Notes: generated by a model from the letters alone, not told the origin. A stretch of DNA of 64,000 bases from Lepidodermella squamata (GCA_047495785.1 JBLDXI010000042.1:4650001-4714000); one strand, 5' to 3'; shown: positions 13,947-23,400, numbered from the stretch's first letter. A program made the numbers and translations.

Positions 13947-15023
13947 ATCCTGGCGCTTGTTTTTCTCATTGTTGCTTTTTTTCTGATGCTTTTTATTATA
14001 ACGATGACGGGACTAAAATCTCTGTGTTTTGTACCAATTTTCGTTCGGCCTGATGATGAATGATACTTATTGTTAGAGATCTTCCTTCATTTGAATGTAT
14101 CTGGTGGCTTCTTGAGGCAGTATGTCTTCAAAGTCTGAAATTTCATAATAAAATGAGACTTGACAGTTGCGATGGCTTTGTTTCACCTATTTGTCAATGA
14201 CGCAGTGAAATCCAAGATTCCCCTAATCATAAAACAATTTGTGGAAATGAGAAAAAATTCTAGGCGAGTTTTTTCGGATTTTTTCGCCAACCTAACGGAC
14301 TCGACGTGGCGGAACTCGAAGACTACTCGAAATTGAATAATTGGGTTAGTTTTGGCTTGTATGACACATGTGGTTTGCTGAGCGGTCGCCGATATATTCA
14401 CGGAATTGTGAAATGTGAAATTTCTCAGCAAGTCAACATTCTTGTTTAAACATTAAACAGTGCAGCGTATGAACAGAGTCCGAGTTTTCATTTTCTCGGC
14501 TTATTCACTCACGGGGTCGTAAAGCGGACTTCTTTGAGTTGTGAAAGTGTTGTGAAAGTTGTGAAAGTGTGGTCCATCATTGACCCATTTTTCATGTAAA
14601 AGTCACTATCATACATCATTGCAGCTGCTATTGAAATGAAAGATTATTGAATTTGTTCCAATAGATTTCCGGATGTGGCCTCGCATCGTCTGGCATTTTC
14701 AAAATTTCAGGAAGTACCGGATTTCGCCATTTGGTGATATCACGTGATATCAATTATCAAATGATGGAATACGTTTGAATGCGCATCTTCATTGTCTCAT
14801 ACTTTATCTGTATCCACTCAGTTCCTTTTTTGCGCATGGGAAGTGGGCCGAAATCAAATTAAATTTAATGAAAATTCCGTCTTACTCCGGATAAGATTTC
14901 TGAACGCTGTCTGTGCCGGCTTTCTACCATCCTCACTCAGAAATCGATTGACTTATCTTTTTCGCTCATTCATTCGTCACAATTCTTAGTTATTAGGTAT
15001 TATTTAGCCTTCTCTGCTAAGTG

Positions 15024-15434
15024 ATGACCTTGAAAAATTCCATGCTGATAATATTGGCCGCAATTATTGTCCACAGTTCCACGGCGTATATCATTCTCGG
15101 CGATCTTAACGACGATATGCTTCAATCAGGCGAAGAGCCAGACCCGCCTGAAGCCATCGCACAACCTGAGCATCCATTGGATGAAATCAAGGCTAGAACC
15201 CCAGTGTCTCGGCAGATGCTCAATGAAATGTGGCACGGCATCATGGGAAGATTGTCTGAACTTCGCGGCCATCCTGACAACGTCGAGGGCCGAATTTTTG
15301 CAAAATTTGTGAGAATGATGATGCTCAAGAAGAAAGCTGCAGCTTTCAAAATGCGGAAAGCACAACGGGCCGCTATGCGAAAGTTGCTGGTCTCAAGCTT
15401 CACAGATAGATCTTTTACATCCGCAGAGGCCTGA
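15024..15434 (+). CDS. Secreted LGDxN-family protein 1 (uncharacterised)
   Basis: ATG 15024, hydrophobic signal peptide, ILGDLNDD motif shared with three neighbours, AATAAA downstream (~15515). Confidence 0.75.
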   Translation: MTLKNSMLIILAAIIVHSSTAYIILGDLNDDMLQSGEEPDPPEAIAQPEHPLDEIKARTPVSRQMLNEMWHGIMGRLSELRGHPDNVEGRIFAKFVRMMMLKKKAAAFKMRKAQRAAMRKLLVSSFTDRSFTSAEA

Positions 15435-15858
15435 TTATCTTATATTTTTATAGCAATGAATAGTACCTAATTTAATACAGAGCTTTATTATGAATCATGA
15501 ATAACTATCGAGAAAATAAATAAATGACCTCGTTCAGCTTAGACAAATGCTTCAAATGGTGAATGTAAAAATAGCTATAAGAGGGCTCTCGCTAGCGTGG
15601 GAGAACGGCCACGATCAGACGCTATACTCTATGAAAATACCTAAAATGAATTTCTCATCGCTATACTTGTCCCAAGTGCTGCAATGGCCTTTCTCGAGCA
15701 ATAAAATCAAATACTCTCCGTGACCCGCGTGATTTTAACCACTGGCTAATTGATATCGATTTTCGGAGAGGCACTCAACAAAAATAGCCGTCAACATTTA
15801 AAATCAGTGTCGTTATTTCGAAAAATTAAGGCTAACTGCTTTTGCTTCTGGACTGAAA

Positions 15859-16143
15859 ATGCTTTTCCTAGTTCCGATATTTCTGCTGGTTCTACAGATA
15901 GGAGGGATAACTGCAGTCATGCTGCCCCTAGAAAACGCTCCGGCAATTTCGGCACGAAACTCGATGATACGAAATCAGTTAATCGATTTGCCAATAGTCG
16001 AAAATAGAGCAGCAGCTCCTATTAACATGGAAAGCGAGACTTCGAAGAGGGAATGGATTCCGGCCACGATTCGGCGGCACCTTAAACCTATGAGGCTCAT
16101 TCCGAGAAAGATAATGACAATACGCAGGCGAATTCTTGGATAA
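15859..16143 (+). CDS. Putative secreted cationic peptide precursor
   Basis: Signal peptide MLFLVPIFLLVLQIGGITA, KR dibasic site, 30-aa R/K-rich C-terminal peptide ending in Gly. Confidence 0.6.
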   Translation: MLFLVPIFLLVLQIGGITAVMLPLENAPAISARNSMIRNQLIDLPIVENRAAAPINMESETSKREWIPATIRRHLKPMRLIPRKIMTIRRRILG

Positions 16144-16647
16144 TTGCTCTAGGGACGTTTGTTTTGATTAGCTTGTTGAAGTTTGATTTGATTTCCTCAT
16201 AAAAAATTGGTTAATGGATCACCTTTTTCTGCGTAAGACGAACGTTAATAGGTAGAGCGTGGCAGCAGAAGATCATAACTTCGTCGCTTTTTGTCTATTT
16301 GGCATAATTGAATCAACTATAATAAACGAAGTTATAAGGCTATTTGATGATTGTTTTCTGAATCATGCGGGCTGTTCTCTGCTAAAATACCTACTCGTCA
16401 GCCCCAGACGGGACCTGCTGCTCAATTGCCCGAGATATATTATCCCCAAATGGCCATTATTCTCACAATTCCACGCATTCTCATCCACGTTGACGCGACC
16501 TTTAATTGATATTGATTGATATACCTGTGCATCGGGACGTTCTGGGCCTCGCATCTTTACTGATAAAAGCAATCAAAGCAGCCGAATAATTCTCATATCC
16601 GCTCACAGTCTCACAGAATATCTAATAGCGATTACTGGTTTATCGCA

Positions 16648-17076
16648 ATGTTTGAACGAATTTCTTTCAGCCGAGTGGTTTTCTTAGCTGTGATCTTGCA
16701 ACTTCTTGTCACTGATATCTATGCAGTCGGGTTTCTTGGGGATCTAAATGACGAGTCTTTGCTTGCTTTGGAGCGCGTCGGAAACGATGAAGACAACCTG
16801 AAGCAGCCCGACAATGTTTTGGCTATTGGCGATGTCAAAGTCTTCCTACCAAGAAATGTCCACGTGTCAAGTCACCAGGTTGTTATGAATCGCGTATCCG
16901 AACTAGCGTTGGCTACCGGAATAGAGGCTGATACGTTGAAATCAATGGTCAAGAAACTTCTTCAACAAAAATCTACAGCATATTCAAGCATGAGGCCACC
17001 TATCCGAAAGATACTGAAATCGCGACAGAGAGCTCGCCCTGTTCCGAATCCCTTCGTCGGTGATGAAGTGCAATAA
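16648..17076 (+). CDS. Secreted LGDxN-family protein 2
   Basis: Signal peptide, FLGDLNDE motif, KVFLP motif shared with the 21049 gene, AATAAA at ~17163. Confidence 0.75.
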   Translation: MFERISFSRVVFLAVILQLLVTDIYAVGFLGDLNDESLLALERVGNDEDNLKQPDNVLAIGDVKVFLPRNVHVSSHQVVMNRVSELALATGIEADTLKSMVKKLLQQKSTAYSSMRPPIRKILKSRQRARPVPNPFVGDEVQ

Positions 17077-17398
17077 TCGAGTGGTTGATATGACCTTATT
17101 TCACAGTAATTCTATGCGATGTTGATCACGCGAATTAGAGCTTAAATTTGATCGCCAATAGGAATAAATTGTACTGAAATCTGCATTGAGAGATGTTAAT
17201 GACATTCAAATAAAGAAAAACTCACGATAAAAGTTTTGAATGAGTAATTCAGGTTAAGCTCAGCAATTGTCCTAAGTCTGGAATTAATTATTTTCGGATA
17301 GCAGTTTCACGTGCTGTCACTGGCTGGTCTAGCCTCGTCCGCTTCCAGTTTTACCGGTGAAATCTTTTCATTATTTATAACACCGTAATATTTTAAAA

Positions 17399-17803
17399 AT
17401 GCCGAATTCAAGATGCTTTCTCTTGATCGTCGGCGGGATAAATCTTCTCCGGCTTGCTGAAACTTTCACGATTCTCGGTGATATCAACGAAGATTTATTG
17501 CCGTCATCCGGATATGAAGGAGATGTCGAAGCCGAATCCCAAGGGAAACCTGCTGAGACACCAGATTTCATCCATGCGGGACACTGGGTCTTAACAGCGA
17601 AAGCTCGTGAACAACTGAAAGATTCGATGCTGGGTCGAGCACAAAAGCCTCTTAGCTCGGATTCTGAGGCTAAAATCTTCGAAAGGTACCTGCTTAGCTT
17701 GGAAAAGTCTGGCCGTGGAAAGCGAAAAACACGACCAATACCCCAAAACCTACAAAAATTGGTTTTGTCCGGCGAGCATAATTTGCCCAGCTTGTTTGAA
17801 TGA
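17399..17803 (+). CDS. Secreted LGDxN-family protein 3
   Basis: Signal-like N-terminus, ILGDINED motif, EAKIFERYL block homologous to paralogs. Confidence 0.7.
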   Translation: MPNSRCFLLIVGGINLLRLAETFTILGDINEDLLPSSGYEGDVEAESQGKPAETPDFIHAGHWVLTAKAREQLKDSMLGRAQKPLSSDSEAKIFERYLLSLEKSGRGKRKTRPIPQNLQKLVLSGEHNLPSLFE

Positions 17804-18084
17804 CATTCCTAGTTTGCGATAGCAAGACTCTGCCCTTAAATTTTGACCACTTTGTTTTCTCGTCCGCCTATTCAAGACATTACAGAGATCAGAGATTTTA
17901 TGGAAAAACTTAACGGAACCTTTCTACGAAAGGTCTCTAATACTGGCATGGCGATTTCCTGAATAAAACCAGGCATGGAAGGATGCATTTTTGCGCGGTT
18001 GTAGTTTTAGGTATGAGAATACCATAAATACCTTAAAATTATCAGAGTTCTGCCTTCTCGATTCTGGTATTAAGTCTGTGTGGT

Positions 18085-18444
18085 ATTTACCGGACTCTGG
18101 TCGTGCCAGGCAAAATGGTCCGGTTTAGACGAAGTTCGGATTATTTTACACCAGACAAGTCCGGATTAGGGAAACGTAACGTTAACTTCAGGAATTTTCG
18201 CATTTTAAATGTCATTCAAGTCATACCTTTCCATAAATAATTCAACTGCATAGACCCTAGATGATGCTAGTTCTGGGATGATTGGCCGATTGAAACATTT
18301 CAAATTTTTCGAGGTGTCTCATGCATTTTCCAGCTTAAACCGTCCTCAGATCCCAAAATCCGTCCGGTTTAGACAGCAAAATTATAGTATAAACTTTTGG
18401 ATCGAGCCACCCGAAAACGACCGACTTAGACAGCTTTCACTGTA
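18085..18444. mobile_element. Degenerate non-autonomous Tc1/mariner (pogo/Tigger-like) element, right end only
   Basis: Repeated subterminal TCCGGTTTAGAC motifs ending in ...TTTCACTG-TA, typical of such elements; matching left TIR not found. Confidence 0.35.
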
Positions 18445-18952
18445 TTCAATATATTATTCAACTTTCTATTTCATAGCATGAGCAAAAGCTGCGTGATTCC
18501 GATAGCGAATTTCTTTCACATCATTTTACCGGAATTAATTAAGGCCACTCCATTATGGCGTTTTGCATCATTGAATGCATATAAACATCAAATCTACGCG
18601 GTAAGTAATACAATTACTTATGGCGAGACATTGGAAGGCGTTGGTGGCTTAATAGCACTCAGTAGATCCGTGATCGCCCTGGCGACAATTCTGCTGCGCA
18701 TGGCCATCAATCCTCGGCGGTGTGGTAAACATCTGAATGTAAGCAGTATTTCTTATAGCTAGAAGCTGCGCCTCTTGTAGGCCACACGTGATCTTGCATG
18801 ACGCACGCCGCCGTGCGATCGATCGATGAATTTAGTTTTTTGGCATGCAAAGCTGTTTACTACACTCGCTTTGCCAAATTCTTCATTATGATGTATTGAT
18901 TTAGCGTTTCCGCATTACTAAGCGCCGCTCGAAAACAAAATATCGCCGAGGG

Positions 18953-18960
18953 TATATAAA
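18953..18960 (+). promoter_or_regulatory. TATA box of small HSP gene
   Basis: TATATAAA ~55 bp upstream of ATG 19014. Confidence 0.55.
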
Positions 18961-19013
18961 GGCCGCAGCCGCAAAGCGCAATAGACATTCGCACAAAAAT
19001 TGTCTGGTTTAAA

Positions 19014-19364
19014 ATGCTAAACTCGTTTGAAACTGACGCCGATGGCAATCGAGCAATCCGATGCTGCTTGGACATGCATGATTGCAAGCCTAACAAAATC
19101 AACATTACACTGGACGAAAAAACGCGCCGAATCAGAATTCTAGCCAACTTGGAACCGAAGGCTGAACCAGATTGCGCTTGCGTTCGAAGCGTTTTCCTCC
19201 GCCATCTTTCATTGCCAAACGATCCGAGCATTGATTTGTCCAAACTTGAGCTGAGATCGCAGATGACATGTGACGGGAAGTTGTGCATCGAGGCGTTTCT
19301 TCCCAAGATGCTTCAAGAATCAATTGCAGCTGCTACTCCTGCTATAACAGTTACCGCTGCGTGA
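19014..19364 (+). CDS. Divergent small heat-shock protein (alpha-crystallin-domain-like)
   Basis: LDMHDCKPNKINITL...RHLSLPND...SQMTCDGKLCIEA resembles the HSP20 consensus (LDV..F.PEEI.V...LP...S.LS.DG.L.IEA). Confidence 0.7.
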   Translation: MLNSFETDADGNRAIRCCLDMHDCKPNKINITLDEKTRRIRILANLEPKAEPDCACVRSVFLRHLSLPNDPSIDLSKLELRSQMTCDGKLCIEAFLPKMLQESIAAATPAITVTAA

Positions 19365-20073
19365 CAGATATATCTGCAAAAGCTTCAATTTTAACAGGCA
19401 ATTTGATCTACCTTCTCAAGTTTGTTAACCTCTTTTACCGGTGTTCTTCGCTGTGAAAAACTGTTCATGTTTTTATCGAATAAAACCGGTGTTTTCTATT
19501 TGAACTTTGGTGAATATGAGCCATTTAATTACCAAGTTGATAGTTCCGGTTGGCAAATACACCGAGTTTGGTGCAACTATTGTTATTCACTCCAGCGTGG
19601 CACCTCAAGCGAGAACCTAAGCGATAGTTCAAAGGAAGGTTCCATTCCATCAAAAACTAACTTTAGTGCCATTATGCTGCTACGGTGTACCCGGAAACTA
19701 ACAGTTCAGCTCTAATATCGCCGCCATGCAGCTTGGGATATATCATGAAGGAATTTCAAAGCATAGAAGTTTTTATTTATCAAGTCCAAATTGTGCATGT
19801 ATATTTCGCTTTATAGTTAAAATATATGAATCACCATTGATCAAGCTTTTCAAAAGTTTAAGGAGGCAAAGGACATCAGCAATAGCTTATGCCAATAATT
19901 GATAGAGTTCTTCTATTAAAAATATTGTTTGCAACCACGTTTACATTTCGAAGGTCTCAGTGGAAGATTTTCCAGCGTAATTCGATCTGGAAAACTCGTA
20001 CAAGTCGTCAAAAGTGAAAAGTGCTATCATGGAAGTGGTGATACCTATAACATAGGTGCGATTATAACTATAA

Positions 20074-20223
20074 ACCGTGTACCTCCACCATCTTTCATTT
20101 CCAAACGATCTTCGGGTCAATTGGTCCAAGATTGAGCTGAGGTCGCAGATGACCTGTGACGGTAAGTTCTGTATCGAGATGACATTTCTCTCCAAGATGC
20201 TTCGAAATCCCATTGCATTCTGA
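20074..20223 (+). pseudogene. 5'-truncated duplicate of the 19014 small HSP
   Basis: Open frame TVYLHHLSFPNDLRVNWSKIELRSQMTCDGKFCIEMTFLSKMLRNPIAF* vs SVFLRHLSLPNDPSIDLSKLELRSQMTCDGKLCIEAFLPKMLQESIAA; in-frame TAA immediately upstream (20071-20073). Confidence 0.8.
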
Positions 20224-20541
20224 TTTAGAGCGATTTTCTGATTTTAATTTAGGCAAGTTCGCTTCTATTATAAGCATTCCATCTTTACGCAGATGCGTGT
20301 TGAGTTTCAGTGAAGCCAGGTCAAGTTCCGAAGGCTCCGGCAGGTTGTCCCCGGTTAGGCTAACAGTCTTGGCGCAGAGACGACTTGTTTCTCCAATCGA
20401 CCTGCCGATCACTCGCAAACATCGGGAATTGACGTCTAGAATGACTGAAATTTCTTTCGGGAGAAAATTGCGCATCTCGACGCAACATCGCAGCTTTCGA
20501 ACACCGTTGCCACTCAGCACAACTGAGGCCAGAGTTGTCAT
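20095..20541 (-). CDS. Divergent small heat-shock protein, paralog 2
   Basis: LRCCVEMRNFLPKEISVIL...HLRKDGMLIIEANLPK, homologous to the 19014 gene; first ATG 20541. Confidence 0.7.
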   Translation of the reverse strand: MTTLASVVLSGNGVRKLRCCVEMRNFLPKEISVILDVNSRCLRVIGRSIGETSRLCAKTVSLTGDNLPEPSELDLASLKLNTHLRKDGMLIIEANLPKLKSENRSKSECNGISKHLGEKCHLDTELTVTGHLRPQLNLGPIDPKIVWK

Positions 20542-21048
20542 TTTTATATATGATAAAGTAAAAAGCGAAGTCACAATTTCTGTGGGAAACAGGCCAGATT
20601 TTAAACACTCACACCTTCGTGCATCATGGGCAGCCGCGTGACTTCAGGTTAAATCGAAATCGATATGAATGCGCGGTGTTTTTGCCTCATTCCTAACCGC
20701 CTCGCTGGTCATGTGAGACGTAGGCTCTTAACCCAAGGGAGACATGGTCGTCTTCAGATTTGATTTGCCATCAAGGGGGTAGTATCAAGGGTAGTACACA
20801 TGTGCGATTCTTTATCAACCCATCAGGTTTCAATAAACAGTGATCAGCTTTGTCTTAAATTCAATTGCGTACCTATTTCCATCATTATCAGCCACGTGTT
20901 CAATTTTAAGGATTCTGTTTCATTAGGGGACGCTATGCCGGTATGATGAAGCTATGCCGATATGTCTTCTGCGGGATTTACTACGACATATGGCTAATAT
21001 TCGGTTATAAAAATGAGGTTATGAGGTAAACCGCGTGGTTTTGACGCC

Positions 21049-21585
21049 ATGTCTGAATTGTCAGTCGAGTGCCAACCTACTTCTAATCGTTCTGGCCACA
21101 AAGCCACGCGGTATTCATCCTATATATTTAAAGTTGTACATTATTACCGTTTCACACTGACGGCACCTCAAGTTTCACATTTCAACATCATACAAGTGCA
21201 AGTTTTTCAAGCTTTCTTTTGGATGAGTTATTTAGCCGTAGTCGCTTCTTACGGATCCCTCAGCGACTTCAACGATGATTTCTTGCTCGCTAGTGAAGAA
21301 GCCAATCGCGATGAACAAGTCAAGGATGTGAAGAAAGCCTTGCAGGTCGATGGAACTAAGGTTTTCTTGCCGTCGAATCTTCGCTCTCATTTGATGAGAA
21401 GGATGAAAGCCCGCTTGGCCGATATAGCTTCGATATCTTCAATCGAGGCCCGCATCTTGGGAAAATTTCTGATGGCAAAAGCGGCGAAAGAGCGAGCTAT
21501 CGCAAAGAAAATCCAGAAGAACGACCGCCAGCTTATGCGTAAAATTAAAACTTTCGATGCTAGGGAGCATCTGATTTCGGAATGA
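21049..21585 (+). CDS. Secreted LGDxN-family protein 4 (start uncertain)
   Basis: SLSDFNDDFLLA, KVFLPSN, EARILGKFL blocks match paralogs; the true start is probably downstream of 21049. Confidence 0.65.
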   Translation: MSELSVECQPTSNRSGHKATRYSSYIFKVVHYYRFTLTAPQVSHFNIIQVQVFQAFFWMSYLAVVASYGSLSDFNDDFLLASEEANRDEQVKDVKKALQVDGTKVFLPSNLRSHLMRRMKARLADIASISSIEARILGKFLMAKAAKERAIAKKIQKNDRQLMRKIKTFDAREHLISE

Positions 21586-22220: not shown

Positions 22221-23400
22221 ATGAAATCCAGCGTTCTGGTGCAGTTGACAGCTTTTCTCCTCGCACAGATTACCATTCGAACTGAGGCTTGTTACGCGAA
22301 GCTTACCCAGAAAACAGTCCCCTTAGGGCATTGTGCAACAGCTCCTTTTGTTATCAATGGAGTTGTCATTAACAAGGATAATCAAAAGTCATTCGCGCCT
22401 GGTGAGCAGGTCTATTTCGGCTGCAATGATGGCTACAAATCCCGAGGAAGCAACGTCATCGTGTGCAATGACGATGGCAAGTGGCTAATCGCCGGCTATT
22501 GCGAAGGTAAAACTCCGCGTCAAGTACTTAAATTCACTTTCTTAACTCCATAATTTAGAGCTCAAATGCAGCGCTTTAAGCATTGAAGCCAAGGCGGTTC
22601 CAGCTTATTCGATTGACTCGATTTCAACCCCTGAGTTGAATAAAGCTGGTTCGGTTATGGCTGTCAAATGTTCTGAGGGGTACCTCAAAGCTCGGTGTAA
22701 TGGCGAGGGTTACCGCGATTTGGTCTTCAGCGGGTACTGCGAGGAGTTCGACTTCAAACGTCACGAATTGCTCGCGAAAGCTGCTCGGCAGGGTGACCTG
22801 GCACTGGCTCAAATAATGGTCCAGGAACTGGGCGATAAGTTGGTGATCGACTGGCGTGATCAAGACATGCATTGCTGCGTTGAAGATGAAGAGTCCGGTC
22901 GATGCATTTGGAACGCAACGGCCCTTCATCGTGCTGTAGCTTGCTCATCCAGCAATGTCGCAGCAACTGTCGATATCATCAATTTCCTAATCGACAATGG
23001 CGCGGATGTGAATGCCCCGGAACGGCTGGTTAAATGGGAGTCTACAATGGCAGAAACGCCACTTCATCTCGCAGTTGGGACTGGCCAAGTTGATCTTGTA
23101 AAAGCTCTATTAGACCGTGGGGCTAACATAGAGAGTGTTCACACCAACAGATGGACGGCTCTTCATGACGCTGCGTTTCAGGGCCATTTAGAAATAGCCC
23201 GATTGCTCGTCGATCGCGGGGCTGATATCAATGCGAGAACGGAGGACTGTAACGATGATTGTGGGCCTCGACCTGGTTTTACCCCGTTAATGCTTGCTGC
23301 TAGCGAGAAAAAGCCGGAAGTTGTCAAGTTTCTGTTGAAGAAAGGAGCAACTCGACAGGGATGCACGTTTCCTCTGTGTAAGAAGAAAAATCTTCAATGA
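22221..23400 (+). CDS. Secreted sushi/CCP + ankyrin-repeat protein 1; exons 22221-22506, 22559-23400
   Basis: Signal peptide; CCP (C..P...NG...F.C..GY...G...I.C...G.W); phase-1 intron; ankyrin repeats (ETPLHLAV, WTALHDAA, TPLMLAA). Confidence 0.88.

Follow-up and report, generated by a model that had tools for sequence, protein, structure and literature searches.

Frog preprodermaseptin and conotoxin precursors carry a conserved prepro cassette in front of diverse C-terminal products. The arminin and periculin precursors of Hydra consist of a signal peptide, a negatively charged N-terminal part and a positively charged C-terminal part and form taxonomically restricted multigene families, and the active part of the arminins is linear, alpha-helical and free of cysteine (PMC11767717). 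Here we analyze a 64,000 bp stretch of the genome of the gastrotrich Lepidodermella squamata (GCA_047495785.1, contig JBLDXI010000042.1, here C42, positions 4,650,001–4,714,000; GC content about 43%), called the window below, whose plus strand carries four small genes, P1 to P4, that encode proteins of a comparable plan. We interpret the window genes as one subfamily within a superfamily of gastrotrich proteins that are small, secreted, Cys-free and taxonomically restricted. The genome searched comprises 121.2 Mb in 151 contigs, and all window coordinates are counted from the first base of the window.

The gastrotrich proteins share with arminins and periculins the signal peptide, the anionic-then-cationic order and membership of a restricted multigene family, but our searches detected no sequence similarity between them; the gastrotrich proteins lack a cleavage site at the charge boundary, and they differ further in having a two-helix core, a motif at the mature N-terminus, a C-terminal peptide and a polar basic helix. 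Like the frog and cone snail precursors, the gastrotrich paralogs share a signal-peptide-plus-N-terminal module and are very different in the rest of the protein, but only about eight residues are strongly conserved and there is no Lys-Arg processing site. Most subfamilies have a conserved C-terminal end as well, which gives the impression of homology over the entire protein and not of a cassette to which different products are attached.

An orphan family in a barely sampled phylum is in itself not surprising. What is new here is that the window genes are tied to a superfamily, that a C-terminal element is recognized, that one cluster on contig C12 holds three subfamilies, that a first relative is found outside this genome and that the lytic-peptide reading is weakened quantitatively. 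Gastrotrichs are almost unstudied molecularly, and a secreted family of at least 27 members with relatives almost absent elsewhere gives a handle on their defense, adhesion, cuticle or signaling.

The window genes and their relatives

P1 (15024–15434, 136 aa, with the in-frame open reading frame (ORF) start listed at 15021/15024), P2 (16648–17076, 142 aa), P3 (17399–17803, 134 aa) and P4 (21223–21585, 120 aa when read from the first ATG that follows a TATA-like element, which lies at about -102) are four intact single-ORF genes with no Cys in the mature parts of their products. A preliminary description of the window had already reported four plus-strand, intronless genes with Cys-free mature parts, and the ORFs lie where it placed them; its length of about 135–140 aa suits P1, P2 and P3, but P4 is shorter. 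A six-frame scan of the window with three profiles found P1–P4 as its only family members.

Pairwise identity among the four proteins is 18–30%. Their relationship was measured by leave-one-out hidden Markov model (HMM) tests on the mature sequences, each set against 1000 shuffles, with the four window genes and with a seven-member set that adds two genes from contig C12 and the metagenomic protein P0001 (both described below). With the four genes, scores are 10.5–40.6 bits, shuffles reach at most 11.2 bits, and every real score lies above all its shuffles; with seven members scores rise to 18.8–78.6 bits, and the signal persists when the first 12 mature residues, which hold the motif, are removed. 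P2 is recovered with 38.7–43.6 bits (shuffles ≤6.9). The most diverged gene is P3, with 10.5–18.8 bits when the motif is included and 0.8–7.8 bits when it is not, and its motif-free score in the seven-member set is marginal (7.8 bits vs. 6.3 for the best shuffle). By these profile scores P1–P4 are true paralogs. They belong to one subfamily, here called A, in which the basic helix begins with a conserved sequence of its own, E-[AS]-x-I-L-x-K-[FY]-L, and the C-terminal motif is degenerate.

The four genes had been taken for the entire family. A profile of P1–P4 finds two further genes on contig C12 (E-values 9e-16 and 1e-9), so there are six close members, and at least 21 more distant ones are present in this genome. 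The latter came to light through a cluster at 2.234–2.247 Mb of C42, 2.4 Mb upstream of the window, whose genes have the same leader-plus-motif module, with F-G-[SA]-L-[NS]-D-I-x-[DE]-D or M-[IM]-L-A-D-[IM]-N-[DE] directly after the leader, and otherwise resemble the window genes in their Cys-free mature part, their acidic-then-basic layout and their length of 110–148 aa. In hhalign comparisons subfamily A is joined to both groups of this C42 cluster via the leader-plus-motif module only (probability 88–89%). An N-terminal profile built from 13 sequences finds 32 places in the genome, P1–P4 among them with E-values of 5e-16 to 8e-9, and on inspection nearly all 32 have the motif immediately after a hydrophobic leader, even at E-values near 0.5. 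Twenty-nine of them are ORFs with a start codon, of which two are truncated, leaving 27 full-length members, none with a Cys in its mature part. The leader-plus-motif module and the charge layout thus recur in at least 27 genes of this genome.

Superfamily members are clustered on C42 (at two places), C12 and C66, with singletons on C1, C4, C7, C20, C24 and C32. On C12 some ten genes are packed into 30 kb, and here members of all three subfamilies are neighbors. Six superfamily genes at C12:18.8–31.5 kb recur in the same order, inverted, at C42:2,234,745–2,246,691 (loci L030–L049), and the six pairs have protein identities of 77–98%, synonymous divergence (dS) of 0.06–0.26 and a nonsynonymous to synonymous ratio (dN/dS) of 0.08–0.47; this inverted block is either a segmental duplication of recent date or a second haplotype that has diverged. 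It is adjoined on C12 by the two genes of subfamily A, at 44.6 and 46.1 kb, and by another superfamily member at 49.0 kb. Two superfamily copies, one on the minus strand of C66 (L050, C66:726066) and one on the plus strand of C24 (L058, C24:3126771), have retained leader and motif but end after 62–64 residues; they are probably truncated or decaying.

Outside this genome relatives are almost absent. When 1.84 billion protein representatives were searched exhaustively with a profile of 27 sequences, one match was obtained, P0001, a 137-aa protein (E-value 1e-8, aligned end to end) that forms a singleton cluster and is encoded on an 858-bp ENA metagenome contig. It is only 28–35% identical to the members in this genome, and so comes from another organism. 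P0001 keeps A-I-L-H-D-I-N-N-D at the N-terminal motif, the helix start E-A-R-I-L-A-K-F-L and the site M-R-K, and ends in I-I-V-T-S-N-L-A-P-L-E-V-P-K; subfamily A is the only subfamily for which a relative was found outside this genome. A word-seeded search of 5.8 billion proteins returned nothing for the six-member alignment and only P0001 itself for the P0001 query, and scans of JGI metagenomes with P0001 and with an alignment of the D/E subfamilies gave no relative. No match was found in Pfam for any of 28 members or in NCBIfam for P1–P4; the PDB, searched by sequence profile and with Foldseek on the P1 model, gave chance-level rows only, and two ESM Atlas queries (best score 0.79) gave no usable lead. 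An EF-hand reading of the D-x-N-x-D in the motif was rejected by eye, as the loop positions are not kept in the paralogs. The family was therefore rightly called unrecognized: no known family was matched, and the 1.84 billion representatives hold a single relative.

In a maximum-likelihood tree subfamily A forms one side of a branch with support 62/93, which is present in 64% of bootstrap trees. Within it P0001 pairs with C12_44633, one of the C12 genes (98/94), and P3 pairs with P1 (98/80) on a branch of length 2.4, the longest in subfamily A. If the root lies outside A, the subfamily would have diversified before the two organisms split. Among closer pairs of the superfamily dN/dS is 0.08–0.54, and among more distant ones 0.35–0.54. 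Within subfamily A dS is saturated, and the case for constraint there is that reading frames have stayed open and length, motif and charge layout have been kept at 18–30% identity, and that a cross-species relative exists. We are confident that these genes represent a real, conserved, secreted orphan family. Even if none of the functional readings weighed below holds, the family remains a catalog entry, with a profile that can be used on new gastrotrich genomes.

Architecture of the proteins

The leaders are strongly hydrophobic, with maximal Kyte-Doolittle values over 8 residues of about 2.0–3.7 (3.70 for the P1 leader, residues 1–22), and the mature parts contain no membrane-like segment (19-residue Kyte-Doolittle maxima ≤1.02), which supports the earlier proposal that the proteins are secreted. 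The motif directly after the leader reads LGDLNDD in P1 (aa 25–31, nt 15096–15116), LGDLNDE in P2 (nt 16735–16755), LGDINED in P3 (nt 17474–17494) and LSDFNDD in P4 (nt 21259–21279), within the previously quoted strings ILGDLNDDMLQ, FLGDLNDESLL, ILGDINEDLLP and SLSDFNDDFLL, all of which are present. All four fit the superfamily pattern, a hydrophobic leader and then L-x-D-[LIMF]-[NS]-[DE]-[DE]. Among 25 nonredundant sequences the L and D never vary and 21 have the N; a D or E comes next in 18 of them and occupies the position after that in 24. Positions -4, -3 and -2 relative to the invariant Leu are [AS]-[FY]-[GA], a conserved c-region of the signal peptide. The small residues at -3 and -1 fit a signal-peptidase site that would place the motif at the mature N-terminus or 1–3 residues from it. 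Thus, P1–P3 encode a predicted signal peptide of cleavable appearance, and its removal would expose an almost invariant N-terminus, h-L-x-D-[IL]-N-[DE]-[DE].

P4 is less clear. Its leader has only 11 residues before the predicted cleavage site, and its 8-residue hydrophobicity maximum of 1.95 is the lowest in the family. The frame is open from 21025, 66 codons 5′ of the ATG at 21223, and contains an upstream ATG at 21049, which had been proposed as the start of this gene; that start would add a 58-residue nonhydrophobic extension, and the ATG at 21223 is the most likely one. The hydrophobic core nevertheless runs on in frame 5′ of 21223, and the N-terminal profile matches residues there. The paralogs start about 22–29 residues before the cleavage site, and P4 has no ATG at that place. 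The start of P4 is uncertain, and hence its secretion is too.

Behind the motif the charge is strongly segregated. By thirds of the mature protein the net charge is -8/+2/+8 for P1, -6/+2/+6 for P2, -8/+2/+4 for P3 and -4/+5/+6 for P4, and an acidic first third followed by a basic remainder is found in 27 of the 29 superfamily ORFs; the mature parts of the four window proteins lie within the superfamily range of about 90–125 residues. In full-length members the first 35 mature residues contain 4–11 acidic and 1–5 basic residues, and the rest contains 9–20 basic ones. In P1 an acidic stretch predicted to be disordered (about aa 32–62) is followed by a first predicted helix (aa 63–82) and then by the basic helix, and both helices have hydrophobic positions that are conserved. 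We delimit the basic helix in seven members by the invariant Glu with which helix 2 begins and by the conserved basic site. All of the helix starts (EGRIF, EADTL, EAKIF and EARIL) and basic sites (MRK, IRK, LQK and MRK) given in the preliminary description for P1 to P4 are present. The basic helix occupies nt 15285–15383 in P1 (from E88 to the site MRK), 16924–17010 in P2, 17666–17758 in P3 and 21445–21543 in P4; it is 31–36 residues long (33 in five of the seven members) and has a charge of +5 to +11. Only its first dozen or so residues (E-A-x-I-L-x-K-F-L...) look amphipathic, and the same residues are conserved, together with positions in helix 1 (N-L-R...G-R-h-x-E-L).

The proteins had been thought to end at MRKLL, IRKIL, LQKLV and MRKIK, but they extend 13–21 residues beyond these ends. 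This C-terminal peptide (nt 15384–15431 in P1, where it has 16 residues, 17011–17073 in P2, 17759–17800 in P3 and 21544–21582 in P4) is short and acidic-hydrophobic and stands behind the conserved basic residue. In the full-length alignment that residue is K or R in 19 of 20 distinct tails. A hydrophobic run comes next, after which most subfamilies have x-[DG]-x-F-D-V-x-x-I-P-x or V-E-Y-V-x-D-I-N; written from the basic residue onward, the motif is h-h-V-x-[DG]-x-F-D-V-x-x-I-P, with the variant F-E-R-V-E-Y-V-x-D-I-N. The window genes keep the basic residue and the hydrophobic run (MRK-LLV, IRK-IL, LQK-LVL and MRK-IK), and the rest of the element is degenerate but recognizable in them; it is clearer in C12_44633 and P0001.

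An AlphaFold2 model of P1 from a 27-sequence alignment has a mean predicted local distance difference test score (pLDDT) of 76 and a predicted template modeling score (pTM) of 0.33. It has helices at residues 2–35 (the leader and motif), 63–82 and 87–130, the last two separated by a four-residue break, and within the acidic stretch residues 42–56 fall below pLDDT 50. For another subfamily, one in which the C-terminal motif is strong, a low-confidence model of a mature protein (pLDDT 59) contains helices only, and its N- and C-terminal motifs are not paired as strands. The models suggest helix-rich, partly disordered proteins with no recognizable fold.

Possible modes of action

The reading we favor, tentatively, is that these proteins are polycations with an extracellular role whose charge is masked at first. 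While they are packaged and exported, the acidic arm would neutralize the cationic helix, either of its own molecule or of another; the N-terminal motif would be a common handle by which the secretory pathway of one cell type sorts or processes them; and the cationic helix, once exposed, would bind polyanionic targets such as microbial or body-surface polymers, in a host-defense-like or surface-coating role. Membrane lysis by a released amphipathic peptide would be a less likely mode of action. As a mechanism, masking with an N-terminal handle and polyanion binding is possible, with the balance of probability against it; the explanation as a whole, in which the reality of the family and the mechanism are taken together, comes somewhat closer to an even chance without reaching it.

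Several observations weigh against charge masking. P4 may not be secreted, to judge from its short leader. In alignments of six to seven members, no mono- or dibasic column is conserved where the acidic stretch gives way to the helices. The amphipathicity of the basic helix does not exceed that of shuffles, and its mean hydrophobicity is low. The conserved two-helix core and C-terminal motif suggest a function of the whole protein, perhaps the binding of a partner, unrelated to charge. With a pTM of 0.33 for P1 and a pLDDT of 59 for the second model, the predicted structural picture is weak. Finally, 23 superfamily genes have no upstream k-mers in common, which gives no support for coregulation.

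A more conventional possibility, and an unlikely one, is that of host-defense precursors in which the acidic segment is a disposable propiece and a protease releases a cationic C-terminal helix that disrupts membranes. The preliminary description had suggested antimicrobial or cytolytic precursors on the strength of the acidic-then-basic layout, and this layout stands: the order of signal peptide, anionic and then cationic region holds throughout the family, as it does in Hydra arminin and periculin (PMC11767717). The proteins are also Cys-free, helical, tandemly duplicated, fast-evolving and lineage-restricted, and the length and charge of the basic segment are suitable. In its details, however, the family does not suit a disposable propiece with a lytic peptide. 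The absence of a basic column noted above counts against this reading, bulky hydrophobic residues make up only 18–33% of the basic helix, and its mean Eisenberg hydrophobicity is -0.29 to -0.65. Even in its best 18-mer the hydrophobic moment does not exceed that of shuffled versions (p 0.11–0.72), and for the whole segment p ranges from 0.02 to 0.68. Conservation in helix 1 and at the start of helix 2 is unlike a hypervariable peptide behind a conserved propiece, and the C-terminal peptide past the basic helix is left unexplained. If the cationic helices are in fact antimicrobial, they would represent a new class of linear host-defense proteins.

The proteins might instead work at full length as structural or packaging components of a gland granule matrix, an adhesive or releasing secretion, the cuticle or an egg envelope, with the oppositely charged blocks and the end motifs driving head-to-tail self-association or condensation. 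Gastrotrichs possess adhesive glands and an unusual cuticle. Strong charge segregation fits such a role, no cleavage site is needed for it, both termini are conserved while the center varies across subfamilies, and in most subfamilies the C-terminal motif alternates hydrophobic and acidic residues in a strand-like manner. However, AlphaFold2 predicts no strands, the window subfamily itself has only a degenerate form of the C-terminal motif, and there are neither repeats nor the Gly/Pro/Tyr/Ser bias typical of matrix proteins; we consider this account improbable.

It is more speculative still that h-L-x-D-[IL]-N-[DE]-[DE], with its cleavage context, is an undescribed lineage-specific sorting or processing signal. 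It would direct the products of at least 27 genes to a single specialized secretory cell or organelle of the gastrotrich, such as the adhesive duo-gland or the epidermal glands, and the charge-block bodies would be the working secretion. The N-terminal acidic/hydrophobic sorting motif of POMC and the N-terminal tripeptides of Surf4 "ER-ESCAPE" are export or sorting signals. The gastrotrich motif, likewise short, hydrophobic and acidic and apparently at or next to an N-terminus made by signal peptidase, has no hydrophobic-Pro-hydrophobic tripeptide and no disulfide loop, so that the analogy would be a functional one only; we know of no receptor for it. The invariant motif at the predicted signal-peptidase-generated N-terminus is a candidate new sorting or processing signal.

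Signaling-peptide precursors (neuropeptide, hormone or pheromone), in which the ligand would be the N-terminal peptide, the 13–21-residue C-terminal peptide or both, are very doubtful. A hormone or pheromone had been named earlier as the alternative to an antimicrobial role, and the conserved basic residue before the C-terminal peptide does speak for it. The two best-conserved elements would each need one cut, after the signal peptide and after the basic residue; the residue before the putative C-terminal cut is the nearly invariant K/R described above, the second before it is basic in 12 of 20 tails, and the product of P3, alone, holds G-K-R. On the other hand, the basic site is followed in nearly all members by Ile, Leu or Phe, which disfavors convertase cleavage, and there is no C-terminal Gly for amidation. 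The N-terminal motif is not closed by a basic site in most members, no curated family was matched, and at least 27 paralogs with a conserved helical core and charge layout are unlike known peptide precursors.

That the genes are unexpressed or decaying ORFs or products of misassembly, with no present function, is hardly credible: P4 has neither a complete leader nor a canonical AATAAA, and the superfamily includes the two truncated copies C66_726066 and C24_3126771, but frames, length, motif and charge layout are kept at the low identity noted above, dN/dS is <0.55 in all measurable pairs, another organism has a homolog, and AATAAA follows P1–P3.

Gene ends and neighboring reading frames in the window

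An AATAAA, a candidate polyadenylation signal, lies on the plus strand at 15515–15520, 81 nt past the P1 stop codon. The corresponding hexamers after P2 and P3 are at 17163–17168 (87 nt past the stop codon) and 17962–17967 (159 nt), and no AATAAA occurs within 200 nt 3′ of the P4 stop codon.

A secreted sushi-ankyrin gene neighborhood might have been thought to say something of the role of P1–P4, but this linkage was rejected as uninformative. An ankyrin-repeat query from the window (22636–23397) gave 3193 first-look candidates in the genome and 189 scored matches, a very large ankyrin expansion; because ankyrin ORFs are everywhere in this genome, adjacency to them carries no information.

A 94-aa ORF between P1 and P2 (15859–16143, plus strand), a possible gene, begins with a hydrophobic, signal-like segment and is Arg-rich at its C-terminus, where Gly is the last residue; the genome contains no paralog of it. 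Between P3 and P4 lie two convergent paralogous ORFs, at 19014–19364 on the plus strand and 20095–20574 on the minus strand, with 33% identity over 102 aa (E-value 4e-17). One of the two has a subthreshold Pfam match to HSP20/alpha-crystallin (E-value 0.0018, 18.7 bits vs. a cut-off of 20.8), and the pair may be divergent small heat-shock-like genes.

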